Positions 7,342-54,640 of a stretch of 64,000 nt of DNA are shown here, in pieces. Below the pieces are notes generated by a model. The model did no database searches. It was given only the letters and a program-made list of their open reading frames with translations, and was not told where the DNA came from. Both the position numbers and the translations under genes were made by a program. Origin of the DNA: Ranitomeya imitator (Eukaryota); assembly GCF_032444005.1 (NCBI RefSeq), contig NC_091286.1, positions 493,954,001 to 494,018,000 on the forward strand, given 5' to 3'. Each line of letters begins with the position of its first letter. The stretch's first letter is position 1.

Positions 7342-7345
<4 letters not shown>

Positions 7346-7377: not shown

Positions 7378-7382
<5 letters not shown>

Positions 7383-8861: not shown

Positions 8862-9456
8862 AAAAAGAATCCGTCAGCAGGTTTTTTGTTATTTAGAATA
8901 GCGTTATGCTGCTCTAAATATCAAAAATCTGCCGACAGATTCCATGACACTATATAGGGGCAGAGAGCCTAGGTCACTTGCTCCACAGCTTGCTGTAGTT
9001 TCAGTACAATCAGTGTTTTATCAGCAGGAGATCATCACTACAGGACAAGGTGTCCAGCTAATGTGTGTAAGCACACCCCCACCAACGATTGGCAGATTTC
9101 TGGCATTGTAGAGGTATAAAGAGCTCAGCATTCACAGCACTGCTACATCTAGAGCAGAGGTCCCCAACTCCAGTCCTCAAGGCCCACCAACAGGTCATGT
9201 TTTCAGGATTTCCTTAGTCTTGCCCAGGTAATAATTGCATCACCTGTGCAATGCAAAGGAAATCCTGAAAACATGACCTGTTGGTGGGCCTTGAGGACTG
9301 GAGTTGGGGACCCCTGATCTAGAGCATAGAAAGCAGGGATTGTATCAAAACTGCACCAAGCAGCTCAGTAAGTGACATCACTGTAATCGGGGTCTCTGCC
9401 CCAACATGATGTTGCTCTCAGATCCTGTAGAAAAAACCTGCTGACAGATTCCTTTT
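8862..9456. mobile_element. T2/Kolobok-type MITE (degenerate) hosting a nested hAT MITE
   Basis: Inverted ends: AAAAGAATCCGTCAGCAGGTTTTTT and AAAAAACCTGCTGACAGATTCCTTTT. Confidence 0.6.
9155..9316. mobile_element. hAT-type palindromic MITE, 162 bp
   Basis: TIRs of about 60 bp (CAGAGGTCCCCAACTCCAGTCCTCAAGG... / ...CCTTGAGGACTGGAGTTGGGGACCCCTG). Perfect 8-bp TSD ATCTAGAG on both sides, which fits the nTCTAGAn target of hAT-Charlie elements. Confidence 0.92.
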
Positions 9457-9559
9457 TGAAGTTTTTCAATCTAAAGTGTACGTACAGTGAATTATCGTTG
9501 ATTTGAAAATCTAAAGTTGCGATAGAAATGGCGTTCTAGAGAGGCAGTGGTCTTCTCAA

Positions 9560-9800
9560 AGATGATGGCCTGTATAGATAGGATCTTTTAATAGGAAAGC
9601 AGGGGTAGATAAAGGCATGGAGTCATATGACAGGCTAATCAAGCATGATGGAATCTTACATCTTCGAGAAAAAATAGAATATGACCAAGAAGGAGCAGAA
9701 ACTTTCTCCGGTGCATAGTCTGTATTTATCCTTCTAGTCCTGATTTCCTGCTTGTATCGCCTGACCATAGGCCGGTGTAGGGGAGGGTGGACTATTTTTT
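9560..9800 (-). mobile_element. Possible L1/Tx1 LINE ORF2 C-terminal remnant
   Basis: A minus-strand frame reads roughly KKIVHPPYTGLWS...LEG...RRKF, loosely like the W..P...W....E....R..KF tail of L1-clade ORF2. Very decayed. Confidence 0.3.
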
Positions 9801-9972
9801 AATCATTTCAGATATTGCAGGTAATTATATTAAAGGCCAATAGAAGAGGAATTTCTGCTCCACCATCCGTGGATAGCATAAGAAAGTTTTTATTGAAGAT
9901 CCATTAAATAAAGAAAACAACACACGGGAACTTAAAAACTGACGCGTTTCAAGCGATCAAACCGCTCTTATT

Positions 9973-10062
9973 CAGGGCTGTGGAGTCGGAGCCCATTTTG
10001 GTGGAGTCGGTGTCATGGAAATTGAGGAGTTGGACGTTTGGCTTACCGACTCCACAGCCCTG
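9973..10062. mobile_element. Short hAT-like MITE, 90 bp
   Basis: 17-bp perfect TIR CAGGGCTGTGGAGTCGG / CCGACTCCACAGCCCTG. No TSD visible. Confidence 0.7.
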
Positions 10063-25975: not shown

Positions 25976-27317
25976 CTAGATAGTAGCCCAATTCTAACGC
26001 ATCGGGTATTCTAGAATATGTACAGTATGTATGTACATCGCGCTTAGCACAGCCACGTAATATATAACACAGCCACGTAGTATATAGCACAGCCACGTAG
26101 TATATAGCACAGCCATATACTATATATCACAGCCACATAGTATATAGCAGCCACATAGTATATAGCAGCCACATACTATATAGCACAGCCCACATAACAC
26201 AGACAGCCATGTAGTATATAGCAGAGCCACGTAGTATATAGCAGCCATAGTATATAGCAGCCACATAGTATATTGCACAGCCCACGTAATATATAGCATA
26301 GCCCACGCAGTATATAACACAGGCCATGTAGTATATAACAGCCCACGTAGTATATAACACTGCCCACGTAGTATATAGCAGCCAGGCAGTATATAACACA
26401 GCCCACTTAATATATAGCACAGCCCACATAGTATATAACACGCATCGGGTATTCTAGAATATGTATGTATGTATGTACGTCGCGCTTACCACAGCCACGT
26501 AGTATATAGCACAGCGACGTAGTATATAGCACAGCCACTTAGTATATAGCACAGCCACGTAGTATATAGCACAGCCACGTAGCATATAGCACAGCCACAT
26601 AGTATATAGCAGCCACATAGTATATAGCACAGCCCACGTAACACAGACAGCCACATAGTATATAGCACAGCCACTTAGTATATAGCAGCCACCTAGTATA
26701 TAGCACAGCCCACATAATATACAGCACAGCCCATGTAGTATATAGCACCACCCACGTAGTATATAGCAGCCAGGCAGTATATAACACATCCCATGTAATA
26801 TATAGCACAGCCCACGTAGTATATAACACAGCCCACGCAATATATAACACTGTCCACGTAGTATATAGCACAGCCCACGCAGTATATAACAGCCCACGTA
26901 GTATATAGCAGCCAGGCAGTATATAGCACAACCCACACAGTATATAACACTGCCCTCGTAGTATATAACACTACCCACGTAGTATATATCAGCCAGGCAG
27001 TATATAACAGCCCACATAGTATATAACACAGCCCACGCAGTATATAGCACAGCCCACATAGTACATAGCAGTGTGGGCACCATATCCCAGTTAAAAAAAA
27101 GAATTAAAATAAATAGTTAAATAATAGTTATATACTCACCCTCTGTTGTCCACCGAAGCTGTCCCGACGCGCGCGATGCGGCCGCCAGCTTCCGTTCCCA
27201 GAGATGCATTGTGAAATTACCAAGATGACTTAGCGGTCTCGCGACCAATCAGTGATGCGGGATTTCCGTTGCAGACAGACAGACAGAAGTACCCCTTAGA
27301 CGATTACGGTATATAGA
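25976..27317 (-). mobile_element. Non-autonomous Helitron-like element with an internal 20-22-bp minisatellite
   Basis: On the minus strand it starts A|TCTATAT and ends with a short hairpin (CCCGATGCGTTAGAATTGGG) followed by CTAG|T. No TIR or TSD. Internal array (TAGTATATAGCACAGCCACG)n. Confidence 0.75.
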
Positions 27318-28195: not shown

Positions 28196-29323
28196 ATGAA
28201 AATGTGTGTAAATGGGTTAGTAACTGGCTTAGTGATAGAAAGCAGAGGGTGGTTATAAATGGTATAGTCTCTAACTGGGTCGCTGTCACCAGTGGGGTAC
28301 CGCAGGGGTCAGTATTGGGACCTGTTCTCTTCAACATATTCATTAATGATCTGGTAGAAGGTTTACACAGTAAAATATCGATATTTGCAGATGATACAAA
28401 ACTATGTAAAGCAGTTAATACAAGAGAAGGTAGTATTCTGCTACAGATGGATCTGGATAAGTTGGAAACTTGGGCTGAAAGGTGGCAGATGAGGTTTAAC
28501 AATGATAAATGTGAGGTTTTACACATGGGAAGAAGGAATCAATATCACCATTACACACTGAATGGGAAACCACTGGGTAAATCTGACAGGGAGAAGGACT
28601 TGGGGATCCTAGTTAATGATAAACTTACCTGGACCAGCCAGTGCCAGGCAGCAGCTGCCAAGGCAAACAGGATCATGGGGTGCATTAAAAGAGGTCTGGA
28701 TACACATGATGAGAGCATTATACTGCCTCTGTACAAATCCCTAGTTAGACCGCACATGGAGTACTGTGTCCAGTTTTGGGCACCGGTGCTCAGGAAGGAT
28801 ATAATGGAACTAGAGAGAGTACAAAGGAGGGCAACAAAATTAATAAAGGGGATGGGAGAACTACAATACCCAGATAGATTAGCGAAATTAGGATTATTTA
28901 GTCTAGAAAAAAGACGACTGAGGGGCGATCTAATAACCATGTATAAGTATATAAGGGGACAATACAAATATCTCGCTGAGGATCTGTTTATACCAAGGAA
29001 GGTGACGGGCACAAGGGGGCATTCTTTGCGTCTGGAGGAGAGAAGGTTTTTCCACCAACATAGAAGAGGATTCTTTACTGTTAGGGCAGTGAGAATCTGG
29101 AATTGCTTGCCTGAGGAGGTGGTGATGGCGAACTCAGTCGAGGGGTTCAAGAGAGGCCTGGATGTATTCCTGGAGAAGAACAATATTGTATCATACAATT
29201 ATTAGGTTCTGTAGAAGGACGTAGATCTGGGGATTTATTATGATGGAATATAGGCTGAACTGGATGGACAAATGTCTTTTTTCGGCCTTACTAACTATGT
29301 TACTATGTTACTATGTTACTATG
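28196..29323 (+). mobile_element. CR1 LINE, 5'-truncated 3' end
   Basis: RT C-terminal ORF, a short 3' UTR, and the 8-bp tail (CTATGTTA)n typical of the CR1 clade. Confidence 0.95.
28204..29205 (+). CDS. CR1 ORF2 reverse transcriptase, C-terminal 333 aa (truncated and non-autonomous)
   Basis: Motifs SGVPQGSVLGPVLF, FADD, WQMRFN, EKDLGI, LERVQRRATK and LEKRRLRGDLI, with no stops. Confidence 0.85.
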   Translation: MCKWVSNWLSDRKQRVVINGIVSNWVAVTSGVPQGSVLGPVLFNIFINDLVEGLHSKISIFADDTKLCKAVNTREGSILLQMDLDKLETWAERWQMRFNNDKCEVLHMGRRNQYHHYTLNGKPLGKSDREKDLGILVNDKLTWTSQCQAAAAKANRIMGCIKRGLDTHDESIILPLYKSLVRPHMEYCVQFWAPVLRKDIMELERVQRRATKLIKGMGELQYPDRLAKLGLFSLEKRRLRGDLITMYKYIRGQYKYLAEDLFIPRKVTGTRGHSLRLEERRFFHQHRRGFFTVRAVRIWNCLPEEVVMANSVEGFKRGLDVFLEKNNIVSYNY

Positions 29324-31539
29324 ACACCTATCCATATGACAGTGCCACTAAAATGAATTGGGAGACTGGAAATTCCTACACTGCTTCACTCGTTCTCTTC
29401 TCTCACACCTCATCTTTTTTTTTTTTTTGTATAATTTTAATCCAAAAATCATGATGCAGTAAATCTAAAATGATAGATAACGACAAAACACATCCAGAGG
29501 TTCCTTTTTGTGCACCTGGAGGAACCTGGAGACATTCACTGCACATAGATTTTAGCTGTAACCAGGGGGCCTAATTATACAATTCGTATGTTAGGTGAGC
29601 GGGTTGTGACTTGATGAGCATTGCAATATACTTTGTCACTCTGCTTTCAACATTTGCAGCGCCAGCAGCTACGCAGTGATGCCAATTCCTAAGAATATGA
29701 GGGCATCTCCTCCGAGTCGCATTCAGAGCTGCAAAAAAGCAAAAGTTAAACCAGCGTGATCCGTACAGACGCGGCCTGGTGTTCATCGCTTTGTAATGTT
29801 GGCGGATGTAAAACTCTTCTTTATAATTAATCCTATGGAGATGAGCTACTTTTTCTATGGCCTGAATATTTGTATTTCTCCACCATTAGAGATAAAAGTG
29901 CGCTGCCGGAGAATCTATGGAATGGCATTATTAGGTTGTATCTACAAGAGGAGATCCAGGAGTAAAGCCTCATTCAGACGCGCCGATAATCTGGCGCAAG
30001 CGTTCGTTAGAACACACATTCACCGATCAACATGACATGATGTACTGCCAATAGGTCAGCATTAAGCCACGTTCACGTCAGGATTTGGTGAGTTTTTTAC
30101 CTCAATATTTGTAAGCCAAAATTAGGAGTGGAGAAATCAGAGGAAAAGTATAACAGAAACACGTCACCACTTCTGCATTTATCACCCACTCCTGGAAAAT
30201 ACTGACCAAATACTGATTGTGCGAACGTGGTCTTAATATCGTCGTTTCGGCATCACATTGGCTTTCCTTAATATTAATAATGATTATTCTGCGCACATAG
30301 ATTCCTGGTTGGTCTGTCTAAACAGGCCATTAAAAGTTTTCCAATCTGCTCTGCATATAGTCAGTGGTTAATAAGAGCCGGAAGGTTTTTTGTTTTTGCA
30401 TTTTCTCCTCAGCTTCTTCCAGGAGCCATACTTTTCTTATTTTTCCGGCCACGCACCCTTAGGGCTTGTTTATTGCTGGACAAGTTGTTCTTTTGAATTA
30501 CACCATTAATTTGACCATATAATGTATTGTAAATCAAGGGAGAAAATTCCAATTGAGGTGAAATTACGAATAATATGCAATTTCACCTTTTTTTTAAGTG
30601 GTAAAAAAAAATCAGAAATTTGGAAAAAAAATGTCTCCACGGAGCTGTCTGACGGCTTGTAGTTTGCAGGGTAACCTGACCTTTTTATTGATACCATTTA
30701 GGGCAGATACGTTTTGATCACTTCTTATTGCGTTTTTCTACAAAGTTGTTGCTACCAAAACACAGCAAATCCAGTGTTTTTGTTTTATTTTTCTCTTTAC
30801 AGTTTATTAATTGGGTTAATGAATTTTTAGATTTTGACAAATCAGACTTTTATGGAAATAACTATACCAAATCTGTCTATTCTTTTAATATTCTTTAACC
30901 CCTTTACCCCCAAGGGTGGTTTGCACGTTAATGACCAGGCCAATTTTTACAATTCTGACCACTGTCCCTTTATGAGGTTATAACTCCGAAACGCTTCAAC
31001 GGATCTTAGCGATTCTGAGATTGTTTTCTTGTAACATATTGTACTTCATGATAGTGCTAAAATTTCTTCGATATAACTTGCGTTTATTTGTGAAAAAAAC
31101 GGAAATTTGGCGAAAATTTTGAAAATTTCACAATTTTCCAACTTTGAATTTTTATTCTGTTAAACCAGAGAGTTATGTGACACAATATAGTTAATAAATA
31201 ACATTTCCCACATGTCTACTTTACATCAGCACAATTTTTGAAACAAACTTTTTTTTTTCAAGGAAGTTATAAGGGTTAAAATTTGACCAGCAATTTCTCA
31301 TTTTTACAACCAAATTTACAAAACCATTTTTTTTAGGGACCACCTCACATTTGAAGTCATTTTGAAGGGTCTATATGGCAGAAAATACCCAAAAGCGACA
31401 CCATTCTAAAAACTGCACCCCTCAAGGTGCTCAAAACCACATTCAAGAAGTTTATTAACCCTTCAGGTGATTCACAGCAGCAGAAGCAACATGGAAGGAA
31501 AAAATTAACATTTTACTTTTTAGTCACAAAAATGATCTT

Positions 31540-34500
31540 TCAGCAATAATCTTTTTAATTTCCCAAGGGTAAAAAGAGAAAATGGACCTCAAAAGTTGTT
31601 GTCCAATTTATCCTGAGTACGCTGATACCCCACATGTGAGGGGGAACCACTTTTTGGGCGCATGGCAGGGCTCAGAAGGAAAGGAGCGCCGTTTGACTTT
31701 TTCAAGCTAAATTTGGCTGGAATTGAGATCGGACGCCATGTCGCGTTTGGCGACCCCCTGATGTGCCTAAACAGTGGAAACCCCCCACAAGTGACCCTAT
31801 TTTGGAAACTAGACCCCCTAAGGAACTTATCTAGATGTGTCATGAGCACTTTTATCCCCCAAGTGCTTCACGAAAGTTTATAACGCCCGGGCGTGAAAAA
31901 AAAAATTCCTATTTTTTCCACAAACATGATCGTTTAGTCCCCAATTTTTTATTTTCTCAAGGGTAAAAGGAGAAATTGGACCCCAAAAGTTGTTGTCCAA
32001 TTTGTCCTGAGTACGCTGATACCCCATATGTGGGGGGGACCACTGTTTGGGCGCATGGCAGGGCTCAGAAGGAAAGGAGCGCCGTTTGACTTTTTCAAGC
32101 TAAATTTGGCTGGAATTGAGATCGGACGCCATGTCGCGTTTGGCGACCCCCTGATGTGCCTAAGCAGTGGAAACCTCCCACAAATGACCCCATTTTGGAA
32201 ACTAGACCCCCTAAGGAACTTATCTAGATGTGTCATGAGCACTTTTATCCCCCAAGTTATTCACGAAAGTTTATAACGCCCGGGCGTGAAAAAAAAAATT
32301 CCTATTTTTTCCACAAACATGATCGTTTAGTCCCCAATTTTTTATTTTCTCAAGGGTAAAAGGAGAAATTGGACCCCAAAAGTTGTTGTCCAATTTGTCC
32401 TGAGTACGCTGATACCCCATATGTGGGGGGGGACCACTGTGTGGGCGCATGGCAGGGCTCAGAAGGAAAGGAGCGCCGTTTGACTTTTTCAAGCTAAATT
32501 TGGCTGGAATTGAGATCGGACGCCATGTCGCGTTTGGCGACCCCCTGATGTGCCTAAACAGTGGAAACCCCCCACAAATGACCCCATTTTGGAAACTAGA
32601 CCCCCTAAGGAACTTATCTAGATGTGTCATGAGCACTTTTATCCCCCAAGTGCTTCACGAAAGTTTATAACGCCCGGGCGTGAAAAAAAAAAATCCTATT
32701 TTTTCCACAAACATGATCGTTTAGTCCCCAATTTTTTATTTTCTCAAGGGTAAAAGGAGAAATTGGACCCCAAAAGTTGTTGTCCAATTTGTCCTGAGTA
32801 CGCTGATACCCCATATGTGGGGGGGGACCACTGTTTGGGCGCATGGCAGGGCTCAGAAGGAAAGGAGCGCCGTTTGACTTTTTCAAGCTAAATTTGGCTG
32901 GAATTGAGATCGGACGCCATGTCGCGTTTGGCGACCCCCTGATGTGCCTAAACAGTGGAAACCCCCCACAAATGACCCCATTTTGGAAACTAGACCCCCT
33001 AAGGAACTTATCTAGATGTGTCATGAGCACTTTTATCCCCCAAGTGCTTCACGAAAGTTTATAACGCCCGGGCGTGAAAAAAAAAATTCCTATTTTTTCC
33101 ACAAACATGATCGTTTAGTCCCCAATTTTTTATTTTCTCAAGGGTAAAAGGAGAAATTGGACCCCAAAAGTTGTTGTCCAATTTGTCCTGAGTACGCTGA
33201 TACCCCATATGTGGGGGGGACCACTGTTTGGGCGCATGGCAGGGCTCAGAAGGAAAGGAGCGCCGTTTGACTTTTTCAAGCTAAATTTGGCTGGAATTGA
33301 GATCGGACGCCATGTCGCGTTTGGCGACCCCCTGATGTGCCTAAACAGTGGAAACCCCCCACAAATGACCCCATTTTTGAAACTAGACCCCCTAAGGAAC
33401 TTATCTAGATGTGTCATGAGCACTTTTATCCCCCAAGTGCTTCACGAAAGTTTATAACGCCCGGGCGTGAAAAAAAAAATTCCTATTTTTTCCACAAACA
33501 TGATCGTTTAGTCCCCAATTTTTTATTTTCTCAAGGGTAAAAGGAGAAATTGGACCCCAAAAGTTGTTGTCCAATTTGTCCTGAGTACGCTGATACCCCA
33601 TATGTGGGGGGGGACCACTGTTTGGGCGCATGGCAGGGCTCAGAAGGAAAGGTGCGCCGTTTGACTTTTTCAAGCTAACTTTGGCTGGAATTGAGATCGG
33701 ACGCCATGTCGCGTTTGGCGACCCCCTGATGTGCCTAAACAGTGGAAACCCCCCACAAGTGACCCCATTTTGGAAACTAGACCCCCTAAGGAACTTATCT
33801 AGATGTGTCATGAGCACTTTTATCCCCCAAGTGCTTCACGAAAGTTTATAACGCCCTGGCGTGAAAAAAAAATTCCTATTTTTTTCCACAAACATGATCG
33901 TTTAGTCCCCAATTTTTTATTTTCTCAAGGGTAAAAGGAGAAATTGGACCCCAAAAGTTGTTGTCCAATTTGTCCTGAGTACGCTGATACCCCATATGTG
34001 GGGGGGGACCACTGTTTGGGCGCATGGCAGGGCTCAGAAGGAAAGGAGCGCCGTTTGACTTTTTCAAGCTAACTTTGGCTGGAATTGAGATCGGACGCCA
34101 TGTCGCGTTTGGCGACCCCCTGATGTGCCTAAACAGTGGAAACCCCCCACAAGTGACCCCATTTTGGAAACTAGACCCCCTAAGGAACTTATCTAGATGT
34201 GTCATGAGCACTTTTATCCCCCAAGTGCTTCACGAAAGTTTATAACGCCCTGGCGTGAAAAAAAAAATTCCTATTTTTTTCCACAAACATGATCGTTTAG
34301 TCCCCAATTTTTTATTTTCTCAAGGGTAAAAGGAGAAATTGGACCCCAAAAGTTGTTGTCCAATTTGTCCTGAGTACGCTGATACCCCATATTTGGGGGG
34401 AACCACTGTTTGGGCGCATGGCAGGGCTCAGAAGGAAAGGAGCGCCGTTTGACTTTTTCAAGCTAACTTTGGCTGGAATTGAGATCGGACGCCATGTCGC

Positions 34501-36140
34501 GTTTGGAGAGCCCATGATGTGCCTAAACAGTGGAAACCCCCCACAAGTGACCCCATTTTGGAAACTAGACCCTCTAAGGAACTTATCTAGTTGTGTGGTG
34601 AGAATTTTGAACCCCCACGTGCTTCACTAAAGTATATAATGCCCAGGCGTGAAAATAAAAAATCCTATTTTTTCCTACAAAAATGATATTTTAGTCCCCA
34701 ATTTTTAATTTTCCCAAGGGTACCAGGAGAAATTGGACCCCAAAAGTTGTTGTCCAATTTGTCCTGAGTACGCTGATACCCCATATGTGGGGAGGAACTA
34801 CTGTTTGGGCACACGTTGGGGCTCGAAAGGGAAGTAGTGACGTTTTGGAATGCAGACTTTGATGGAATGTTCTGCTGGCATCATGTTCCATTTGCAGAGC
34901 CCCTGATGTGACTAAACAGTAGAAACCCCCCACAAGTGACCCCATTTTGGAAACTGTACCCCCTAAGGAACTTATCTAGTTGTGTGGTGAGAATTTTGAA
35001 CCCCCACGTGCTTCACTAAACTTTATAATGCCCAGGTGTGAAAATAAAAAATCCTATTTTTTCCCACAAAAATGATATTTTAGTCCCCAATTTTTAATTT
35101 TCCCAAGGGTACCAGGAGAAATTGGACCCCAAAAGTTGTTGTCCAATTTGTCCTGAGTACGCTGATACCCCATATGTGGGGAGGAACTACTGTTTGGGCA
35201 CACGTTGGGGCTCGAAAGGGAAGTAGTGACGTTTTGGAATGCAGACTTTGATGGAATGTTCTGCTGGCATCATGTTCCATTTGCAGAGCCCCTGATGTGA
35301 CTAAACAGTAGAAACCCCCCACAAGTGACCCCATTTTGGAAACTGTACCCCCTAAGGAACTTATCTAGTTGTGTGGTGAGAATTTTGAACCCCCACGTGC
35401 TTCACTAAACTTTATAATGCCCAGGTGTGAAAATAAAAAATCCTATTTTTTCCCACAAAAATGATATTTTAGTCCCCAATTTTTAATTTTCCCAAGGGTA
35501 CCAGGAGAAATTGGACCCCAAAAGTTGTTGTCCAATTTGTCCTGAGTACGCTGATACCCCATATGTGGGGAGGAACTACTGTTTGGGCACACGTTGGGGC
35601 TCGAAAGGGAAGTAGTGACGTTTTGGAATGCAGACTTTGATGGAATGTTCTGCTGGCATCATGTTCCATTTGCAGAGCCCCTGATGTGACTAAACAGTAG
35701 AAACCCCCCACAAGTGACCCCATTTTGGAAACTGTACCCCCTAAGGAACTTATCTAGTTGTGTGGTGAGAAATTTGAACCCCCACGTGCTTCACTAAAGT
35801 TTATAATGCCCAGGCGTGAAAATAAAAAATCCTATTTTTTCCCACAAAAATGATATTTTAGTCCCCAATTTTTAATTTTCCCAAAGGTAACAGGAGAAAT
35901 TGGACATCAAAAGTTGTTGTCCAAATTGTCCTGATTACGCTGGTACGCCATATGTGGGAAAAAACTGTTTAGGCACACGTTGGGGCTCGAAAGGGAAGTT
36001 GTGACGTTTTGGAATGCAGAAATTGTCTGCGGTCGTCATGTTCCGTTTGCAGAGCCCCTGATGTGCCTAAACAGTAAAAAAAACCCACAAGTGACATCAT
36101 TTTGGAACCTAGACCCCCCCCAAGGAACTTATCTAGATGT
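31540..36140. repeat. Tandem array inside piggyBac: 8 x about 394 bp (type A), then 4 x 389 bp (type B, last copy partial and diverged)
   Basis: The anchor GGAC(C/A).CAAAAGTTGTTGTCCAA occurs at about 31584, 31978, 32371, 32765, 33159, 33552, 33946, 34341, 34735, 35124, 35513 and 35902. Confidence 0.95.
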
Positions 36141-36182
36141 GCCCCCTTTTTGGAACTAATGTACGCTTTCTTGTAAAGTAAA

Positions 36183-37955
36183 TTAGTAGTGCATGGAGGT
36201 GTGGTACAATCTGAAGCAATCCTTCATACACAGGCCAGGTTTTTCGGGGCAGGTGTCGCATTGATAAATGGTGTCCTTGCGTATTCCCCTTTTGTAACAC
36301 ACTCGGCACCTTTTTTGCGGCTTACCTTTTCTGCCGGTTGGCGGGACCACCCCCGGAAAATGCTGGCCTGGTACGATACGAGCACCTTCAGTTCCGGAAG
36401 TACTGGGGCCCTCTCCTTCCGGAGTACCAAATATCAGGGCCTTAACCACTACCTCCTGGAACTGAAGGTACGACGTATCGGTGTGGCGTGCACATCGTAA
36501 CAGCAGGAAAGCGTTGAGCATTGCCATTTGTACGATGTGGACGGCCAACTTTTTGTACCACACCTTGGCCTTTCTCAAAGCACTGTATGGTTGGAGGAGT
36601 TGATCAGAGAGATCAACCCCCCCCATGCTTTTGTTGTAGCCCAGTACACAGTCCGGTTTGCAGACCTGTGTAGAGGTACCCCGTACAGTGCTGAGGGCTC
36701 TGCCATCACCATGTATGGTGGTCAAGAGAAGGACATCCCTCTTGTCCTTGTACTTGACCACCAGCAGGTGGTCGCTACATTGGGCCTTGCTCTCACCTTT
36801 TCTGAGCATCTGCCGAAGTAGCGTCTTTGGGAGGCCTCTCTGATTTTTGCGCACAGTACCGCAGGCTGCGGTACCTCGCGCAGAGAGGGATTTGTAGAGT
36901 GGGATGCTGGTATAAAAGTTATCAGTATAGAGGTGATAACCTTTATCCAGCAGTGGGTGCACCAAATCCCACACGATCTTCCCACTCACTCCCAGGACAG
37001 GAGGACACTCAGGGGGTTCAATCCTGCTGTCCTTCCCTTCATACACTCTAAACCTGTGGATGTACCCTGAGGCACTCTCACACAGCTTGTAGAGTTTGAT
37101 TCCGTACCTGGCCCTTTTGTTGGGCAGGTATTGACGGAATCCGAGCCGCCCCTTAAAATGGACCAAGGACTCATCCACGCAGATGTCCCTTTTGGGCACG
37201 TACACTTCAGAAAACTTTTTGTTGAAGTGTTCGATGACCGGTCGAACTTTGAACAGACGGTCAAAGTTGGGGTCATCTCGTGCGGGACACTGTGCATTAT
37301 CGGAATAATGCAGGAATTTATGGATGGCCTCAAAACGTCTCCGAACCATGGCCATTCGGAATACTGGAGTGTTATATAAAACATCTACACTCCAATATTG
37401 CCGCATTTCTGGCTTCTTCACGATCCCCATGTGGAGGACCAGGCCCCAAAACTGCATCATTTCAACTGCGTCTACAGGAGACCAGTTGGAAAATGATGTA
37501 CCGGGGTTTTGCTCCAAAAATTGACGAGCATACAAATTAGTTTGCTCCACCATGAGGTTAATAAAATCCTCAGAGAAAAAGACTTTGAAAAAGTCTGTTT
37601 CTGTGAGGCCCGTGGTGTCAAACTTGATTCCTGATTCTGCCACAAAATCAGGAATCAGTGGCTCGTAATTTTCGGGGGGCGAGGTCCATGTGGGTTCCGC
37701 AGTGGGGAGCGCTGGTTCAGGAGTGGTGGGGGCTGCCTCATCTTCTGTCCTGGGGCGTCTGCGTGGTGGTTCCGCAGGACCCGAGGAGGAAGAGGAGGAG
37801 GAGGAGGAAGAGGAGGAGGAGGAGGAAGAGGATGAAGAATCAGAAAAGTGAAGAAAAGTGGGATCCTCTCCCTCGCTATCAGTGTCGGAGGCAAGGAAAG
37901 CATATGCCTCCTCCAATGAATAGCGCTGTTGGGACGAACGGGACGAGCGGGACAT
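36183..37955 (-). CDS. piggyBac-family (PGBD4-like) DDD transposase, 590 aa, apparently intact
   Basis: Catalytic motifs CVDESLVHFKGR, YTDNFYTS and MGGVDLSDQ. C-terminal cysteine-rich domain CRVC-x13-CDTC-x6-C-x3-C-x4-H. Acidic/Ser-rich N-terminus. No stops or frameshifts. Confidence 0.95.
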   Translation of the reverse strand: MSRSSRSSQQRYSLEEAYAFLASDTDSEGEDPTFLHFSDSSSSSSSSSSSSSSSSSSSGPAEPPRRRPRTEDEAAPTTPEPALPTAEPTWTSPPENYEPLIPDFVAESGIKFDTTGLTETDFFKVFFSEDFINLMVEQTNLYARQFLEQNPGTSFSNWSPVDAVEMMQFWGLVLHMGIVKKPEMRQYWSVDVLYNTPVFRMAMVRRRFEAIHKFLHYSDNAQCPARDDPNFDRLFKVRPVIEHFNKKFSEVYVPKRDICVDESLVHFKGRLGFRQYLPNKRARYGIKLYKLCESASGYIHRFRVYEGKDSRIEPPECPPVLGVSGKIVWDLVHPLLDKGYHLYTDNFYTSIPLYKSLSARGTAACGTVRKNQRGLPKTLLRQMLRKGESKAQCSDHLLVVKYKDKRDVLLLTTIHGDGRALSTVRGTSTQVCKPDCVLGYNKSMGGVDLSDQLLQPYSALRKAKVWYKKLAVHIVQMAMLNAFLLLRCARHTDTSYLQFQEVVVKALIFGTPEGEGPSTSGTEGARIVPGQHFPGVVPPTGRKGKPQKRCRVCYKRGIRKDTIYQCDTCPEKPGLCMKDCFRLYHTSMHY

Positions 37956-38089
37956 TTTTGTGTGAATATGGTGATTGGGTGCACTTTATTGATAACTGTA
38001 TGTGTATGTGTGGGGGGATAGTGATTTGTGCAAACTTATCTGAAAAGAAAATGCTAAAAGGAGAAGAAAAACCTGTAAAAAAAAAAAAA

Positions 38090-39560
38090 AAGGCAGGCAC
38101 AAACTCTGATAAGAGAACTGCGTCACTTATCAAAGTTTGGCGGCTGCGGGATGTGTGTACGGAGGTTGCGCAAAAAGGCTGAAGGGAAAAAAGCGAGCGC
38201 GAGAGTTGATCGGTGAACTGCGTCACCAATCAACGCTCGGCGGCTGTTAAATGGGCGCACGGAAGGAGGTGCAAAGGGGGGTAAAAAGAGGGGGAAGGGA
38301 GATGGGGGTGGAAGTGGGGATTGGGCAGGGATCAGTGATCAAAACGTACGGTTGTAGTCAGGTGGCGCAAAAGGGGGGTGAAAAAAAAAAAAGGAAAACG
38401 GCAGGCACAAACTCTGATAAGTGAACTGCGTCACTTATCAAACTTTGGCGGCTGCGGAATGTGTGTACGGAGTTGGCGCAACGGGGGTGAGGGAAAAAAA
38501 GCGAGCGCGAGCGTTGATCGGTGAACTGCGTCACCAATCAACGTTCGGCGGCTGTTAAATGGGCGCACGGAAGGAGGTGCAAAGGGGGGTAAAAAGAGGG
38601 GGAAGGGAGATGGGGGTGGAAGTGGGGATTGGGCAGGGATCAGTGATCAAAACGTACGGTTGTAGTCAGGTGGCGCAAAAGGGGGGTGAAAAAAAAAAAA
38701 GGAAAACGGCAGGCACAAACTCTGATAAGTGAACTGCGTCACTTATCAAACTTTGGCGGCTGCGGAATGTGTGTACGGAGTTGGCGCAACGGGGGTGAGG
38801 GAAAAAAAGCGAGCGCGAGCGTTGATCGGTGAACTGCGTCACCAATCAACGTTCGGCGGCTGTTAAATGGGCGCACGGAAGGAGGTGCAAAGGGGGGTAA
38901 AAAGAGGGGGAAGGGAGATGGGGGTGGAAGTGGGGATTGGGCAGGGATCAGTGATCAAAACGTACGGTTGTAGTCAGGTGGCGCAAAAGGGGGGTGAAAA
39001 AAAAAAAAAGGGAAAACGGCAGGCACAAACTCTGATAAGTGAACGGCGTCACTTATCAAACTTCGGCGGCTGCGGAATGTGTGTACGGAGTTGGCGCAAC
39101 GGGGGTGAGGGAAAAAAGCGAGCGCGAGCGTTGATCGGTGAACTACGTCACCAATCAACGTTCGGCGGCTGTTAAATGGGCGCACGGAAGGAGGTGCAAA
39201 GGGGGGTAAAAAGAGGGGGAAGGGAGATGGGGGTGGAAGTGGGGATTGGGCAGGGATCAGTGATCAAAACGTACGGTTGTAGTCAGGTGGCGCAAAAGGG
39301 GGGTGAAAAAAAAAAAAGGAAAACGGCAGGCACAAACTCTGATAAGTGAACTGCGTCACTTATCAAACTTTGGCGGCTGCGGAATGTGTGTACGGAGTTG
39401 GCGCAACGGGGGCGAGGGAAAAAAAGCGAGCGCGAGCGTTGATCGGTGAACTGCGTCACCAATCAACGCTCGGCGGCTACTAAATGTGCGCACGGAGGCG
39501 GCACAAATGGGGGTGGAGGGGGTAAAAAGAGGGGGAAGGGGGGATTGGGGTGGATGAACG
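38090..39560. repeat. Tandem array inside piggyBac: about 5 x 308 bp, upstream of the transposase ATG
   Basis: The anchor GGCAGGCACAAACTCTGATAAG occurs at 38092, 38400, 38708, 39018 and 39325. Confidence 0.95.
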
Positions 39561-40319
39561 GGGATTGGGGTGGATGAACGGGGATTGGGGTGGATGAACG
39601 GGGATTGGGCAGGGATCAGGGATAAAACTTACGTTTAGTTGTCTTCTTTCTTTAGCAGGGATTGTGGTGCTACAGGCTGCTGTGGCACCACAATACCCAG
39701 CACGGCAGGGAGATCCAGGCACAAAATCCAGCAGGGAGATCCAGCAGTATGACCGCTCTGTAGGAATCCTCAGCTAGAATGAGGACCCTGCAGAGCGGTC
39801 ATACACAGGTCAGGCAGGTGACACAGACAGGTCACAGAGCGGTCATGCTGCTGCTGTGACCTGTCATTGGTGGGATCGACCATAACATCGATCCCACCAA
39901 TCAGAGCTTTCCTGGTGACCTGGCTGTGACCTGCCTAGGATCGGATCTGTTCGCGCCATCCTAGGCAGGTCACAGCCAGGTCACCTGCAGGGCACAGAGC
40001 GGTCACAGAGTGATCGCCGCTGCGCCCTGTGATTGGCGCGATCGACGATGACATCGATCGCGCCAATCGGCTCCTGCAGGCCCTGCTGGGCCTGCACTGT
40101 GTCCTATCCTAGGATCGGTGCTATTAGAGCACCGATCCACGCAGGTTCCGGCAGGGCACAGCGCGGTAATACCGCGCGGTGCCCTGCGATTGGCGCGATC
40201 GATGCGATCGGCGATCGCGCCAATCCGGGCTGTTCTTGCCGGTGCCTGGCGTTGCCAGGCACCGGACCTAGGATCGAGTACATCGGTACTCGATCCTAGC
40301 CTGTGACCTCATTGTTTCA

Positions 40320-40415
40320 GCCGCTCCGATTGGCTGAAACAATGAGAATGGCTGTGATTGGCTGTTCAGAATTGAACAGCCAATCACAGCGATCGAGAGG
40401 GCGGGTGGGCGGCGA
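40320..40415 (-). promoter_or_regulatory. Candidate transposase promoter region (clustered CCAAT/ATTGG boxes plus a GC box)
   Basis: ATTGG at about 40329 and 40357, CCAAT at about 40380, and GGGCGG at about 40399-40412. It lies between the element end and the gene. Function is inferred. Confidence 0.4.
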
Positions 40416-41096
40416 CAATGCCCTGGATGCCGAGGCCATCTCCCCCCAGGTGAGATGGCGTCGGAATTTTAATGCGATCACCGCGACTTAAGTCGCGGTA
40501 TCGCATTAAAGGGCAGGACGTACTATCCCGTCAAGGGTCAGATAGGCCCAGGGCACCTCGACGGGATAGTACGTCCAAGGTCACAGAGGGGTTAAAACCC
40601 TTTTGTAATACTTTTTATTGAATGTTGTAGTCTCTTTAGAAGACTTGAACCTGCGATCAATCTGATGTCTTGTATTATACACAACAATACTGAAGCACAA
40701 ATCGTGATCTCTTATGAACCCCAGCCAAAGCGTCATCTTAAGAAGACACCCGGCTATCATGGCAACACATCAGTGCCCCGTGAGTGCAGGAAGGTATGGA
40801 GGGCAACAGGTGGTCAGAATAGCGTTCCTACCAGATGGCACATTGTAAATGCCGCTGTCTGAGAATGACAGTGGCATTCAACAGAATAACAGTCGTAACA
40901 CTTTATCACTTGAGGCTGTTAGAGGCAAGTGATGGCTGAATAATACAGCCATCATCTTCCTGAAAGGAGCAGGCTCTTGAGCCTGTGTGACTGTGCATAC
41001 AGAGATAGATTTGAGTCACAGCACTGCCCACTGGACTCATATACACCCAATCACCAGGGAGCTGGCAACATGCACAGCATGACAGGTTCTCTATAA

Positions 41097-41343
41097 AGGG
41101 ACTCTGTCAGCTCTCCCTTATCTCGGTGCTTTACAGTGCGGATAAGCATTTAAATACACCTCATATGTTTGTTTTATCTCAATCGTTGATTGACAGCTCT
41201 GGCTCCATAAGGCCAGAGAAGGGTGGAGATTGTGGGGAACCAAGCAGGTGCTAAGGTGTAGTTAAATGTTTGGCCTGGATATGAAGCACTGAGCGCCTGG
41301 ACTTGATTTAAACAGTCATTTAGTTTGTGCTGACAAAGTCCCT
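41097..41343. mobile_element. T2/Kolobok-type MITE
   Basis: TIR AGGGACTCTGTCAGC / GCTGACAAAGTCCCT, with ATAA and TTAA flanks. Confidence 0.7.
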
Positions 41344-41366
41344 TTAACTGTTCTTGAGCATCTTTA

Positions 41367-41735
41367 GGGTAAGTGCACACGATGAGGATTTTGCTGCGGA
41401 TCCGCAGCTGTGGGTCTACAGCAGTTTCCCATGAGTTTACAGTTCACTGTAAACCTATGGGAAACCAAAAACGCTGTGCACATGCTGCGGAAAAAAACGC
41501 GCGGAAACGCAGCGGTTTACATTCTGCAGCATGTCAATTCTTTCTGCGGATTCCACAGCGGTTTTACAGCTGCCCCTATGGAAAACCACAGTTGTGAAAC
41601 CGCAGTGAAAACCACAGAAAAACCACAGTAAATCCACGATAAATCTGCAGCAAAAACGCATCGTTTTTGCCCTGCAGATTTATCAAATCTGCTGCGGAAA
41701 AATCCGCAGTGGCCAAGAATACGTGTGTACATAGG
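41367..41735. mobile_element. PIF/Harbinger-like MITE
   Basis: TTA|GGGTAAGTGCACACG ... CGTGTGTACATAGG|TTA, with internal CCGCA/TGCGG inverted repeats. Confidence 0.65.
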
Positions 41736-44523
41736 TTAGTTTGGCCAAATGAAGGCGGGATGCACAGCCTGCCCTGCCTGTACAGCCCTGGTGGGGTACT
41801 CTGTATCCACAGGTGTTTTGTGGCCACCACTTTAAAGTGTCGCTTTTGAGGCTGTGTCGTAGTTTCACTATAATCAGTATTTTACCAGCAGGAGATTACC
41901 ACTACTGGACAAATATTTTTGCATAGAAATACTCCCCAGCGAGTCTTGGGTTTCCAATCCTCCTAATAGATTTTACCAAAAAATTAGAAAACGTCAGTAG
42001 TTTTAACAGTCAGTGTTCAATAGGCTGCATGAAAATTTACTTGGACTTACTTGCCTTGCAACAAAAGCCGCTGGTCAAGGTGACGCCTCCAGAGCTTTCT
42101 ATTGTGTCCGGACAGTCTGAAGACGATGTGGTGGAAAGTATTGATGACTCTCCGCCAGATTCAGAATTGCCCTTTTTCCAGGAAATGTGAATGCTAATAG
42201 CTGATAATGGAGCTTGGTTTTATTTGTTTGCTTTTACTTTCATGTGAAGTAGTGTGAAATCAGTTGTGAGTGGTGACCATAAAGTGATATTTTGCTGCCC
42301 TTTGTATTGATAAGTGAACTGCTCACACAAATTCAGGAAAATGTTTACTTTGCTGTATTCAAAAGGGCCAATGGTTAGAAATATAAAAAATCAGTTCTCT
42401 GCTGTCCCTGGCCCTCACCCTGTCCCTGCAGCTCCATGCATGGTCCTTCCACATTTTTATCATACACAGGCCTTTATTCTTCATGCCACTTGACTAGTCC
42501 CATCATATTTTTGGTGCCTCCAGTAACCATAATCATGTCATCATTTCGTGGCCCGGGCATTTCTCGATATCGGCACACTCCCATTCCTCATGTGACGTCA
42601 TGATGTGAGCTAGGCCGCAATGTCTTAATGTTGTGCGGGCACAAAAGGTACCAGGAATTCGATAGGACCCATTGTGTGAAGAAGACCAGGAGGTCTGTGT
42701 ATGAAAACCAGGCCAGAGCCACCAAACGGAGCTTTGCAGGCAAGGTGATGGCCGGGAGATGCGAGTATTATTTTTTTTTTTCAAAGAAAAAAGAAATGTC
42801 ATACCACGACTAAGTCTATATGCCGAGACACGCATGTTTATTAGACTCGTGTTGACTTGCCTGTATTTGCTTACAGCTAAATATGATGTTTTGTATAAAC
42901 ACTTACCGTACCTTTTTATCGCTAAGGACCTTTTTTTTCCCCAAAATTGTTTTACCCTATGCTTACTATGCTCTGGGGTCTGGAGACACAATAAATTTGC
43001 TTCAAATAAATTTCGGATTTTAACAGATGCATTCATCATTGCTGATGTGTAATATGTTGCATAACCAATGGCAATATCTGAAGCCTTAGATTATTGTCTT
43101 ATGACTCCAGACATTTGGGGTCTCTGGATATAGTGATAATAACCGGTTATGGTAATTGTAATTAGAGGGCATAGAGCGGATATTTTATGACATGCTCCGC
43201 TGGTTGAATAACATGTAAAAAAGTTGAGCCCAGAATTTATGATTATACAGAGCGCTAAATGGCTCTTGAGTTTGTATGGTAACATGAAGGACCAATCACA
43301 TTGCAGACGGTGGCAATTGAGGCTGTTGCTGAAGAATCGCTGCCATCATCTCCGACCTTGTCTGCTTCACAGCTGTGTGAGCAGCTGACATCTCCAACCA
43401 GACAATCAAAGAACGTGTCCTCACTGCTAAACCTCACGGCAATTATCCATACAACATTCTGCTGGCAAACCCTAACGCTCCTCTGGAGAGCTTTACACTA
43501 TTTGCCTTTTCACACAGAGCAACGTGTAAGTCATCAAAAATGGAGCAAACGATCAAAAAAAAAGAAGCCCCCAGAGCACAAGCCTTGAATTTGAATAAAT
43601 TCATATAGCTAAACTGGATAAGTAATTTCCTCCAATCAACTTCCTCAACTAATGAATTTCTATACTTTTACCTAGCAAGTCAGAAAAGCGCTCGAGGCCG
43701 CCGAGTGTTCCCTGTGATAACTACGGACCCCGTTATAGATTTTTCTTTGCTCTGCTTCAGCCAAGGGCAAATTGTGATTTGCAATTAAATGAAGAAATAC
43801 GAACAACAAGGGTCATTCAAAGCAGGGACAAAATGTAATTTATTGCCAGAGACGGGCAGAATTAAGTTGATTATATGATCCAGGCAAAATGGCCTCCCGA
43901 CCTTTTAGCAATTTTCACTACGTGAGTTAATAAACTTTAATCACTTTCTCAGTAATTGTTTGCTTGAGTCTGTTTCCGGTTGGCCTAAGTGCGGTCATGA
44001 TTTGGAATAATTTGTTAGTTTTTGGCATGTTTTGCTAGTTTCCTAAAACTGAGGATTGAAATAATTGAGAAGTTGGGAATTTCCAGCTTTATATACTGTT
44101 GTTATGTTCATTTTCTTTAAGACCTATTGAGTGTTGGGGAAAAAGTCTACATTGACTCAAGGTTGGCACTGTTCCTGGTTTTTAGTAAAACATCACATTA
44201 TTATGAACTTCTGACAAGTATTTGTTAAATTGAAACATGGAAAATGTTGAGATAATGGTAACACTGTCCAAAAATATATATATACAGACCTTCAGTGCAC
44301 TTTCATGGAAACCACTGTGTATAGATAAGAGATCTCCAAATACTCTGTTGTGACATAAAAAAGCAGCAAAAAACCCAATGCGGAAAATGTTTTTCTTCAA
44401 TGCCTTTGTATAGCCATATTGTAATAAAAAAACATACTGTGAAGTGCAGGAACAAAAACACAAACTATTCACCCCAGTTAGGCAACAATGGCTATGTCCT
44501 ATAGAACAGGGGAGGGTAATTAA

Positions 44524-44851: not shown

Positions 44852-44984
44852 TTAATTTTCCAGAGGGGCCACATGAGACTCTATATACAGTAGGAGACCC
44901 TATATAACCCCTTATATACCATATGAGCCTACACACAGCCCCCTATATATAGTATGAGCTCCACATAGCCTCTGTATGCAATAT

Positions 44985-45720
44985 GAGCCCTCACATATCC
45001 TCATATATGCAGTTTAAGCACCCACATAGCCTCCTATATTGAGTATAGCCCCACATAGCCTTCTATGTACAGTATGGCCTCACATAGCCTATGTACAGTA
45101 TGGCTCCCCACATAGCCTCCTACATTCAGTATAGTCCCCACATAGCCTCCTACATTCAGTATAGCCCCCACATAGCCTCCTACATTCAGTATAGCACCCA
45201 CATAGCCTCCTATGCACAATATGGCCTCCCATAGACTTCTATGTACAGTGTGGCCCCCCCACATAGCCTCCTATATTCAGTATAGCCCCCACATATCCTT
45301 CTATGTACAGTATGGCCCCCACATAGCCTCATATGTACAATATGGCCTCACATAGCCTTCTATGTACTGTATGGCCCCCCACATAGCCTCCTATATTCAG
45401 TATAGCCCCACATAGCCTTCTATGTACAGTATGACCCCCACATAGCCTCATATGTACAATATGGCCTCACATAGCCTTCTATGTACAGTATGGCCCCCCA
45501 CATAGCCTCCTATATTCAGTATAGACCCCACATAGCCTTCTATGTACAGTATGGCCCCCCACATAGCCTCCTGTATTCAGTATAGCCCCCACAAAGCCTT
45601 CTATGTACAGTATGGGTCCCCACATAGCCTTCTATGTACAGTATGGCCCCCCACATAGCCCCCTATATTCAGTACGGCCTCCACATAGCCTCCTATATAC
45701 AGTATTCGCCAACACATAGC
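44985..45720. repeat. Minisatellite of about 31 bp (CACATAGCCTCCTATATTCAGTATAGCCCC-like), probably inside a non-autonomous element
   Basis: Direct reading. It is followed by TACTCACC, as in the other repeat-bearing elements here. Confidence 0.85.
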
Positions 45721-46559
45721 CGAGTCCTAAATACATGCAAACATCCCATACACGTATGAAAAAAAACACAAATACTCACCTTGCCCCAATCCCCCCAGTG
45801 CTGTGCTTATATCTCCGGTACACTGATTCTTCGTGCAGTAGATGCATTGTAATGATGTAATCGTGTCTGCTATCTCATGCTGATTGGTGGGTGTAAGGAG
45901 CCAGCAGATCCTTCCTCCACCAATGTAGTCACCGCTATCTGCATTCTGAGGAGCAAGCGGTGGGCGGGGGCATGGTGCGGCCCATGGGCCACTGTTTTCA
46001 GCACTTCCGATGTCTGCGCGCTTTGCCCAACTCTGCCATAGATGATCCTAATGGAAATGCATGAAGAAGGGGCATGTCACCCAAAATGCTGCATCAAGAT
46101 TGGGCGTTGTTACATGTAAAGAATTCTTCCTGCTACATCTGTCTCCTTTGTTCACCGATATACCATGTGCATAAGGGATGAGGATCTTCTAGAGGTCTCC
46201 AGTCATTGTTGCCTAATTGGGGTGAATATTCTGTTTTCTGTTTCTGCACTTCACACTATCTTTGGCTTGTTTTCTAGAATATGGCTATAAAAAAATGAAG
46301 AAAAAAAATGTTCCGCATTGTGTGATTTTGCTGTTTTTTATAATATTAACAATGTCATATAAATTCCCCTGGCGATTATGCAGTATTAATCACAGTAGTG
46401 TGTGATCTCGTCCAGGACAGGTGACCCATATAGGCATGGTAAGGGTGATGAATGTCAGACCACCACAAATCAGCTACAATCTGCAGCGGATTTTTGCAGT
46501 GTATTCAGTCATGGACAACCCCCTTTTGAAAACTCTAGACAATTTCACATTTTTTTTTC

Positions 46560-52825: not shown

Positions 52826-54640
52826 CATCGGGTATTCTAGAATATGCATGTCCACGTAGTATATTGCACAGCCCACGTAGTATATTGAACAGCCACGTAG
52901 TATATTGCCCAACCACGTAGTATATTGCCCAGTCACGTACTATATTGCCCAGTGACGTAGTATATTGCCCAGCCACATAGTATATTGCCCAGCCACGTAG
53001 TATATTGCCCAGTCACGTAGTATATTGCCCAGTCACGTACTATATTGCCCAGTCACGTACTATATTGCCCAGCCACGTACTATATTGCCCAGTCACGTAC
53101 TATATTGCCCAGTCACGTACTATATTGCCCAGCTACATAATATATTGCCCAGCCACGTAGTATATTGCCCAGCCACGTAGTATATTGCCCAGTCACATAC
53201 TACGTGGCTGGGCAATATAGTATGTGACTGGGCAATATACTACGTGGCTGGGCAATATACTACGTGGCTGGGCAATATATTATGTAGCTGGGCAATATAT
53301 TATGTAGCTGGGCAATATAGTACGTGACTGGGCAATATAGTACGTGACTGGGCAATATAGTACGTGGCTGGGCAATATAGTACGTGACTGGGCAATATAG
53401 TACGTGACTGGGCAATATACTACGTGACTGGGCAATATAGTACATTACCCAGCCACGCACTATATTGCCCAGTCACGTACTATATTGCCCAGTCACGTAC
53501 TATATTGCCCAGTCACGTACTATATTACCCAGCCACGTAGTATATTGCCCAGCCACATAGTATATTGCCCAGCCACGTAGTATATTGCCCAGTCACGTAC
53601 TATATTGCCCAGTCACTTACTATATTGCCCAGTCACGTACTATATTGCACAGCCCACATAGTATATTGCCCAGCCACGTAGTATATTGCCCAACCACGTA
53701 GTATATTGCCCAGTCACGTACTATATTGCCCAGCCACGTAGTATATTGCCCAGCCACGTAGTATATTGCCCAACCACGTAGTATATTGCCCAGTCACGTA
53801 CTATATTGCCCAGCCACGTAGTATATTGCCCAGCCACGTAGTATATTGCCCAGCCACGTAGTATATTGCCGAGTCACATACTATATTGCCCAGCCACGTA
53901 GTATATTGCCCAGTCACGTAGTATATTGCCCAGTCACATAGTATATTGCCCAGTCGCGTAGTATATTGCACAGCCCGTGTAGTATATTGCACAGCCCGCG
54001 TAGTATATTGCACAGCCCACGTAGTATATTGCACAGCCCGTGTAGTATATTGCACAGCCCGTGTAGTATATTGCACAGCCCGCGTAGTATATTGCACAGC
54101 CCGCGTAGTATATTGCACAGCCCACGTAGTATATTGCACAGCCCGCGTAGTATATTGCACAGCCCACGTATTATATAGCAATGTGGGCATCATATCCCTG
54201 TTAAAAAAAAGAATTAAAATAAAAAATAGTTATATATCACCCTCTGTTGGCCCCTGGATCCAGGAAGCGTTTACAGACGCTCCTCGCGCGCTCCGGTCTC
54301 AAGAGTGCATTGCGGTCTCACGAGATGATGACGTAGCGGTCTCGCGAGACCGCTACATCATCATCTCGCGAGATCGCAATGCATGGACTGGTCACCGGAG
54401 CGTGACTGGAGGGGAGTATGGAGCGGGCACTGACTGCAGGGAGGAAGGAGCGGCCATGTTGCCGCCGGACTGTGCCCGTCGCTGATTGGTCGTGGCAATG
54501 GTCGTGGGCGTTTTGCCACGACCAATCAGCGACTTGGATTTCCATGACAGACAGAGGCCGCGACCAATGAATATCCGTGACAGAAAGACAGACAGACAGA
54601 AAGACAGACGGAAGTGACCCTTAGACAATTATATAGTAGA
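52826..54640 (-). mobile_element. Non-autonomous Helitron-like element, relative of 25976-27317, 3' end truncated, with a 20-21-bp minisatellite
   Basis: Shares CATCGGGTATTCTAGAATATG and the terminal GAAGT(G/-)ACCC.TTAGAC.ATTA...AGAT. Array (TAGTATATTGCCCAGCCACG)n. Confidence 0.75.

Follow-up and report, generated by a model that had tools for sequence, protein, structure and literature searches.

Does the genome of the poison frog Ranitomeya imitator contain a complete piggyBac transposon that is still able to move, and does this transposon carry satellite DNA along with it? The question is raised by a stretch of 64,000 nucleotides of contig NC_091286.1 (assembly GCF_032444005.1, positions 493,954,001 to 494,018,000), which is called the window here and to which all coordinates refer. 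An initial annotation, based on the sequence of this window, had described a giant and apparently autonomous piggyBac element with an unbroken transposase gene between two TTAA sites. According to the analysis presented here, the element is real, intact and young, and it is probably polymorphic. With moderate confidence, we regard it as a full-length member of a young family of piggyBac-like DNA transposons with a high copy number, and as one unit of 9.7 kb as delimited in Table 1.

The transposase gene

The listing of open reading frames (ORFs) contains a single long ORF in the stretch occupied by the element, located on the minus strand at 36183-37955 and encoding 590 amino acids without any internal stop codon. 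The deduced protein matches the Pfam domain DDE_Tnp_1_7 (PF13843) over positions 2-349 of the 349 positions of the model (E = 2.4e-92) and, at its residues 544-585, the piggyBac zinc finger zf-Tnp_2 (PF13842; E = 2.9e-09). The C-terminus displays the corresponding CxxC...CxxC...CxxxC...H pattern, and close to the N-terminus there is a run of 18 serine residues.

Among the solved structures, the top match is the piggyBat transposase (9c0f; E = 9.3e-75), which aligns over residues 43-590 of the query and 30-578 of the chain, followed by the piggyBac transposase from T. ni (6x67/6x68; E = 5.8e-34), of which the core alone could be aligned. In the latter alignment (6x67), the sequences CVDESL, YTDNFY and GGVDLSDQ of the query coincide with the DEQ, CDNWF and GGVDTLDQ motifs of the T. 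ni enzyme, and D261, D345, D448 and D451 of the ORF pair with D268, D346, D447 and D450. Two features of the piggyBac superfamily are therefore present, namely a DDE_Tnp_1_7 domain with the catalytic D-D-D triad and a C-terminal Cys-rich (cross-brace zinc finger) domain, which aligns with the C-terminus of piggyBat. The unbroken ORF, the three catalytic aspartate motifs and the complete Cys-rich domain had all been read from the sequence in the initial annotation, and each of them was found again in our comparisons, which support a transposase predicted to be catalytically intact.

Copy number, age and selection

A third feature, which distinguishes a piggyBac transposon from a single-copy PGBD gene, is its occurrence as an interspersed multicopy family. 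Contigs from four public runs were aligned to positions 35900-41900; run X1 comprises 2.7 Gb of contigs from organism A, and run X5 only 6 Mb of contigs. In X1, the summed word depth of the ORF bins ranged from 37,000 to 107,000, compared to 9.35 for the sole contig of the right flank, so that the ratio between ORF and flank amounts to approximately 4,000-11,000 at an identity of at least 90%. In total, 29,775 contigs were aligned (4,178 at ≥99%, 9,186 at 95-99% and 16,411 at 90-95% identity), and an exact contig of 124 nt (37310-37433) had a depth of 2,456, which corresponds to approximately 260 copies. At many sites of the ORF, the letter of the window copy accounts for the smaller part of the family depth.

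Even the small run X5, in which the flank had a depth of zero, yielded three ORF contigs at a depth of 7-11; the two longer ones (614 and 414 nt) have 1 mismatch each and the shortest (232 nt) has none. A contig of 603 nt from the 5' arm (1 mismatch, depth 9.5) occurred in X5 at the same depth as the ORF contigs, and pieces of the element with 0-2 mismatches were also found in organism B. The window copy belongs to a subfamily that is young and contains the 5' arm as often as the ORF. The family is thus interspersed and multicopy, and the ORF is no single-copy domesticated gene. The 64-kb window itself was searched for further copies of the element, whole or in part, and for a related flank, and none was found.

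The ORF differs from other copies at 21 listed sites, of which 10 are synonymous and 11 non-synonymous. Compared to a neutral synonymous share of about one in four, which is a rough estimate and not a computed value, and with sites that are few and non-random, this synonymous excess fits selection on the transposase along a lineage of active copies.

Relationship to other TTAA-targeting elements

The closest proteins are fragmentary gene models of Ranitomeya imitator with 78-89% identity, followed by proteins from other hyloid frogs (54-69%) and by Uribo1 and Kobuta from Xenopus (40-43%). In a maximum-likelihood tree, the window ORF groups with three Ranitomeya rows (support 100), and this group is nested in a clade of hyloid frogs, in which each species has several paralogues. 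The end branch of the ORF is very short, with a length of 0.039 compared to 0.23-0.32 for its neighbours in the tree. The TxpB sequences are placed in a clade of their own (support 100) that does not include the window ORF. Membership in TxpB (Uribo/Kobuta), the frog lineage that had been named for comparison in the initial annotation, was rejected on the basis of this position and the low identity; judged by its protein sequence, the element belongs to a hyloid-frog piggyBac lineage.

The piggyBat element from Myotis lucifugus resembles the window element in its transposase, which can be aligned over the full length including the Cys-rich tail and likewise has a Ser/acid-rich N-terminus, and both represent seemingly young multicopy families of vertebrates. 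However, piggyBat is a compact element of approximately 2.6 kb in a mammal, whereas the window element resides in a frog, is 9.7 kb long, consists to 61% of tandem arrays and includes a hairpin chain of approximately 1 kb. The TxpB family of Xenopus, consisting of Uribo1, Uribo2 and Kobuta (Hikosaka et al. 2007, as cited in PMC6004289 and PMC5381638), also comprises frog elements of the piggyBac superfamily with TTAA targets, but forms the separate clade mentioned above; according to the same two citing papers, Uribo2 retains excision activity. The T. ni element shares with the window element the alignable DDD(D) core and, going by the putative ends of the latter, also the TTAA target, ends that start with CCC and the asymmetry of these ends. 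It is, however, only 2475 bp long and has terminal and subterminal inverted repeats of 13 and 19 bp, respectively (PMC5381638), whereas the inverted match of the window element comprises just 5-8 nt and the two transposases are distant in sequence.

A survey of 157 piggyBac-like elements reported lengths of 1,721-8,451 bp with the untranslated regions (UTRs) as the most variable part, asymmetric ends, and terminal inverted repeats (TIRs) that average 14 ± 2 bp, can be as short as 5 bp and begin with C, usually with CCC (PMC5381638). Teratorn from medaka, a mobile fusion of a piggyBac with a herpesvirus, even reaches 180 kb (PMC5601938). Like Teratorn, the window element is well above 2.5 kb, but its extra length consists of non-coding tandem repeats. 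Considering these lengths, the term giant was overstated; the element is long for a plain piggyBac, yet it is no new kind of element.

A different type of TTAA-targeting frog transposon is Xmix, a T2/Kolobok miniature inverted-repeat transposable element (MITE) of Xenopus with AGGRR tips (Hikosaka and Kawahara 2004, cited in PMC6004289). The Xstir repeat family arose through amplification of an internal part of Xmix (as cited in PMC6004289). In the window element, too, a tandem array would have formed from a segment within a TTAA-targeting transposon of a frog. Xmix, however, has no transposase gene. Since the tips of the window element next to TTAA are CCCC at both ends and not AGGRR (PMC6004289), membership in the Kolobok/T2-MITE group was rejected.

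Ends of the element

TTAA is present on both sides of the element, as originally described, and the two sites delimit a putative span of 9701 bp. The 8-mer TTAACCCC, which includes the TTAA, occurs exactly twice in the window, at 30895 and 40595, and the two sites face inward. Shuffled sequences have an expectation of 2.6 such sites per window on both strands; a correctly oriented pair so near the ORF would be found by chance in approximately 0.5% of cases, according to a rough estimate.

The right end could be examined with a contig of 1,109 nt from X1 (record 8, depth 9.35), whose own positions 1-816 match 40592-41402 on the minus strand with six letter differences and an insertion of 5 nt. 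Because of these differences and since a window-type allele is absent from X1, this run represents another individual or haplotype. The 293 nt of record 8 past 40592 are apparently unlike the element and occur at single-copy depth, whereas a contig from a filled site would be expected to enter the repeat by approximately 30 nt and then to stop. Record 8 is probably the unoccupied site, and hence the insertion would be polymorphic between individuals. Under either reading of record 8, the repeat ends exactly at the right TTAA, which is thereby confirmed as a boundary between repeat and unique sequence. The final 75 nt of the right arm together with the TTAA (40517-40595) are common to a far more abundant family: loose ends were found at 40517 in three runs, and the bin 40523-40723 reached a depth of 128,515, with just 73 of its 201 nt located within the element.

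The left end, i.e. approximately the last 350-445 nt from 30899 to approximately 31248-31339, is AT-rich, free of hairpins and unlike the satellite. A likeness of the left tip to the satellite that was noted by eye was dropped, since its score of 9-12 falls within the range of shuffled sequences (8-11) and is not significant. When the left 657 bp (30895-31551) are split into 31-mers, 92% of these are present in run X1 and 60-78% in large DNA runs from four additional organisms (H, I, J and K). At near-identity, the left arm has a much wider distribution than the ORF, the arrays and the right arm, and it belongs to a repeat whose conservation or spread is unusual. This distribution may fit an old and very abundant non-autonomous family carrying the same arm, and it may also fit an origin in a different element. 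In contrast to the left arm, almost none of the ORF, the arrays, the right arm and even the neighbouring high-copy repeats is present in the runs of these four organisms, which are absent from a list for 35900-41900 that extends down to a share of 9%.

Two alternative left ends, at 31455 (TTAACCC, plus strand) and 31279, were judged less likely, because they are located inside the stretch that is colinear with the satellite. A scan of metagenome and viral contigs with a 21-mer of the left tip yielded nothing.

Tandem arrays and satellite

The tandem arrays account for 61% of the 9701 bp, or for 66% if the diverged edge units are included, which agrees well with the earlier estimate of about two-thirds satellite-like sequence. 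The internal repeats had also been described as nearly identical. This holds within the individual blocks of the 394-bp array, where units 1-7 (394 bp) are 97-99% and units 9-11 (389 bp) 98-100% alike, but not between the two blocks, which are only 81-83% alike and are joined by a hybrid unit 8.

At both edges of the 394-bp array there are older relatives of its unit. On the left, 31340-31543 is colinear with the satellite unit at approximately 58% identity (local score 32, compared to 11.5 ± 1.4 for shuffled sequences), and a second, weaker colinear piece is found at 31249-31288. On the right, satellite-like sequence starts not more than 42 nt downstream of the stop codon, with 35900-36141 being 74% identical to the unit. 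Moreover, three contigs of other ORF copies run past 36168 into a diverged version of the same satellite-like sequence. Because the array is bracketed by older diverged units, the satellite appears to be native to the 3' region and not a chance neighbour; this bracketing is what the in-place expansion of a native 3' segment would be expected to leave behind.

The summed word depth of the satellite unit in X1 is approximately 1.6 million, compared to 9.35 for the single-copy flank. A protein search with a satellite ORF of 121 amino acids gave no matches. Two metagenome or viral contigs containing a satellite 23-mer were discarded as chance matches, since only those 23 nt are in common.

Putative regulatory features

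The 5' arm, read from 40591 down to 39620, has a GC content of 58%, a CpG observed/expected ratio of 0.84 and nine CCAAT boxes per kb, compared to 2.7 per kb window-wide. In the 308-bp array the CpG observed/expected ratio is 1.21, and each unit contains two hairpins with an identical GACGCAG loop as well as a CCAAT box. A donor-like GTAAGT at 39632, just upstream of the 20-bp repeat, and the acceptor-like T15-ACAG at 38073 would delimit an intron of 1.56 kb in the 5' UTR. From their sequence, these features suggest a promoter and an intron in the 5' region. On the opposite side of the gene, 35959-36182 is probably the 3' UTR, and an ATTAAA is located 309 nt downstream of the stop codon.

The GACGCAG loops place the motif TGCGT twice in each 308-bp unit on the plus strand and eight times in the array. 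TGCGT is the motif bound by the Cys-rich domain (zinc finger) of the T. ni piggyBac transposase (PMC5861402). We treat its occurrence here as a possible resemblance only, because the motif is short, the sites are 1-2.5 kb away from the end and the zinc finger is divergent.

Evaluation of alternative explanations

Several observations weigh against one mobile 9.7-kb unit and have to be considered together with the other explanations of this locus. The left boundary at 30895 is one that we infer, and the locus might be a composite. This would be a young piggyBac copy consisting of ORF and 5' arm with its right end at 40595, whose true 3' end is lost or buried and which lies directly beside two foreign sequences, namely an independent satellite array and a TTAA-type repeat that is unrelated, more widely distributed and has a TTAACCCC tip by chance. 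The species distribution of the left arm indeed differs from that of the ORF and the right arm: for 35900-41900, none of the organisms H-K reaches the share of 9% found for the weakest organism listed. The two ends are nearly non-complementary, since beyond the TTAA the tips share CCCCT only (8 of 13 positions match), a comparison of the subterminal regions of both ends gave no significant similarity, and a left arm with 33% GC and no hairpins is opposed to a GC-rich hairpin chain on the right. In run X1, the satellite exceeds the ORF in abundance approximately 30-fold, and the right tip is more abundant than the ORF as well. Furthermore, four of the seven TTAACCC sites of the window are clustered at the left arm within 30813-31461, namely at 30813 (minus), 30895 (plus), 31273 (minus) and 31455 (plus), and 30895-31279 can alternatively be parsed as a 385-bp unit from TTAA to TTAA with an inverted match of 11 out of 13. 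(Two of the four clustered sites fall within the diverged proto-unit of the satellite.) On the other hand, the window has no TTAACCCC sites apart from the two that face inward on either side of the ORF, which is hardly expected by chance, and a search for an alternative end with TTAA and CCC between the stop codon and the array found none. Through the diverged units, the array is linked to both the 3' UTR and the left arm, and other ORF copies likewise continue into satellite-like sequence. Asymmetric piggyBac ends are known, with TIRs as short as 5 bp (PMC5381638), and the tip match observed here is at the lower limit of the reported range (12-19 bp, rarely 5 bp; PMC5381638). Taken together, we consider a composite locus rather unlikely, although it deserves serious attention.

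A second group of observations concerns activity rather than structure. Contigs from RNA libraries cover the ORF, but they also cover the arrays and the flank, so that no specific transcript is discernible, and among the RNA-library joints listed there is no splice joint that matches the putative 5' intron. The reading of record 8 as an empty site, in addition, relies on the coordinates of minus-strand records, for which records 9, 17 and 25 indicate the rule that the first position of a record corresponds to the higher coordinate in the window; otherwise, contigs of three runs would start exactly at the arbitrary first base of 35900-41900. The element could thus be a full-length copy from a family that has just stopped moving, for instance because of silencing or because its ends are no longer recognised, and its ORF would be intact merely through youth. 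The RNA coverage would agree with this, as would the predominance of other letters at many positions of the ORF, a sign of older subfamilies. However, the near-identical copies at high number, the very short end branch and the probably polymorphic insertion argue against it, and we regard this explanation as quite improbable. The reverse possibility, a domesticated and PGBD-like single-copy host gene derived from a piggyBac, might be suggested by the public annotation of its relatives as 'piggyBac transposable element-derived protein 3/4-like' and by the intact ORF with its excess of synonymous differences. Since the depth of the ORF is thousands of times that of the flank, with ORF contigs assembled even from the 6-Mb run X5, this possibility is refuted by the copy number; the ends with TTAA and CCC, the several paralogous lineages per species and a tree that departs from the species tree do not fit such a gene either.

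Proposed organisation and way of transposition

The favoured explanation therefore remains a full-length transposon, which in the orientation of the gene would consist of TTAA, the 5' hairpin arm, the 308-bp array, the transposase gene, the array of approximately 390-bp units, the AT-rich 3' arm and TTAA. The CpG- and CCAAT-rich hairpin arm would presumably serve as promoter and as a region of transposase binding, and a native 3' segment of approximately 390 bp would have expanded into the array of 11 units. The transposase would bind both of the unlike ends, excise the element via hairpin intermediates and insert it at TTAA, as in ordinary piggyBac cut-and-paste transposition, with the arrays being carried along as passengers. 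The element may be active at present.

A more far-reaching idea, which we put forward tentatively and do not regard as probable, is that the element acts as the autonomous 'master' of abundant non-coding, TTAA-bounded elements that would carry the approximately 390-bp satellite and hairpin chains elsewhere in this genome. In this case it would be active and polymorphic, would mobilise approximately 10 kb and would seed some 175,000 satellite units, corresponding to about 1% of the genome if a size of approximately 7 Gb is assumed, a value that was not measured.

To our knowledge, few vertebrate piggyBac elements are active in nature, the known examples being piggyBat, Uribo2 and Teratorn. If the favoured explanation is true, a young, intact and probably polymorphic family from a poison frog would be added to these few, and if the element is active, it might be used as a gene-transfer vector with unusual and strongly asymmetric ends. 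It would also provide a concrete case for studying how a major satellite can originate from a DNA transposon and be spread by it through an amphibian genome of very large size. Tandem repeats riding on TTAA transposons of frogs are already known as such (Xmix/Xstir, cited in PMC6004289). Should the left end be wrong, the locus would reduce to an ordinary young piggyBac copy beside a satellite.

Features and surroundings

Table 1. Features of the putative piggyBac element in window coordinates, ordered from left to right
Feature	Position	Strand	Evidence and remarks
Left TTAA	30895-30898	none	Putative target-site duplication; 3' end relative to the ORF; one of two TTAACCCC sites
AT-rich 3'-terminal arm	30899-31248	minus	Starts CCCCTTTACCCCC; GC approximately 33%; not similar to satellite
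Old diverged proto-unit of the 394-bp satellite	31249-31551	minus	Colinearity with satellite unit
Tandem array, 394 bp x 11.2	31552-35958	minus	Tandem Repeats Finder
Diverged partial satellite unit plus 41 nt after the stop codon	35959-36182	minus	74% identity, reaches 36141
piggyBac transposase gene	36183-37955	minus	590 codons plus stop, ATG start; Pfam, structure alignment, tree
5' leader	37956-38076	minus	Acceptor-like T15-ACAG ending at 38073
Tandem array, 308 bp x 4.7	38077-39514	minus	Tandem Repeats Finder; units 98-99% alike
20-bp repeat x 3.5	39540-39609	minus	Tandem Repeats Finder
GC-rich 5' arm	39620-40591	minus	Chain of at least 15 back-to-back hairpins; CCAAT-rich, promoter-like
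Right TTAA	40592-40595	none	5' end of the element; match of the single-copy flank contig from X1 ends exactly at 40592

The right flank contains a short repeat at 41327-41727, whose summed word depth in X1 (0.47-0.71 million) is far above that of the piggyBac ORF and which includes a small palindrome at 41424-41465. A search of the 64-kb window against Rfam found nothing. A second inward pair of TTAACCC sites, at 6458-8717, spans 2.26 kb and directly follows an array of 90 copies of a 24-bp repeat; its tips beyond TTAACCC are unlike each other. To the left of the element, an ORF of 333 amino acids at 28204-29205 contains a partial reverse-transcriptase domain (RVT_1, E = 1.1e-15) and is probably a fragment of a retrotransposon. 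Long minisatellites with up to 113 copies are located at 336-3072, 4221-6389, 26045-27070, 44869-45721, 52852-54176 and 60403-63954, with periods of 39, 24, 20-21, 30, 20 and 31 bp, respectively. These minisatellites give rise to long spurious ORFs on both strands and to false Pfam matches.

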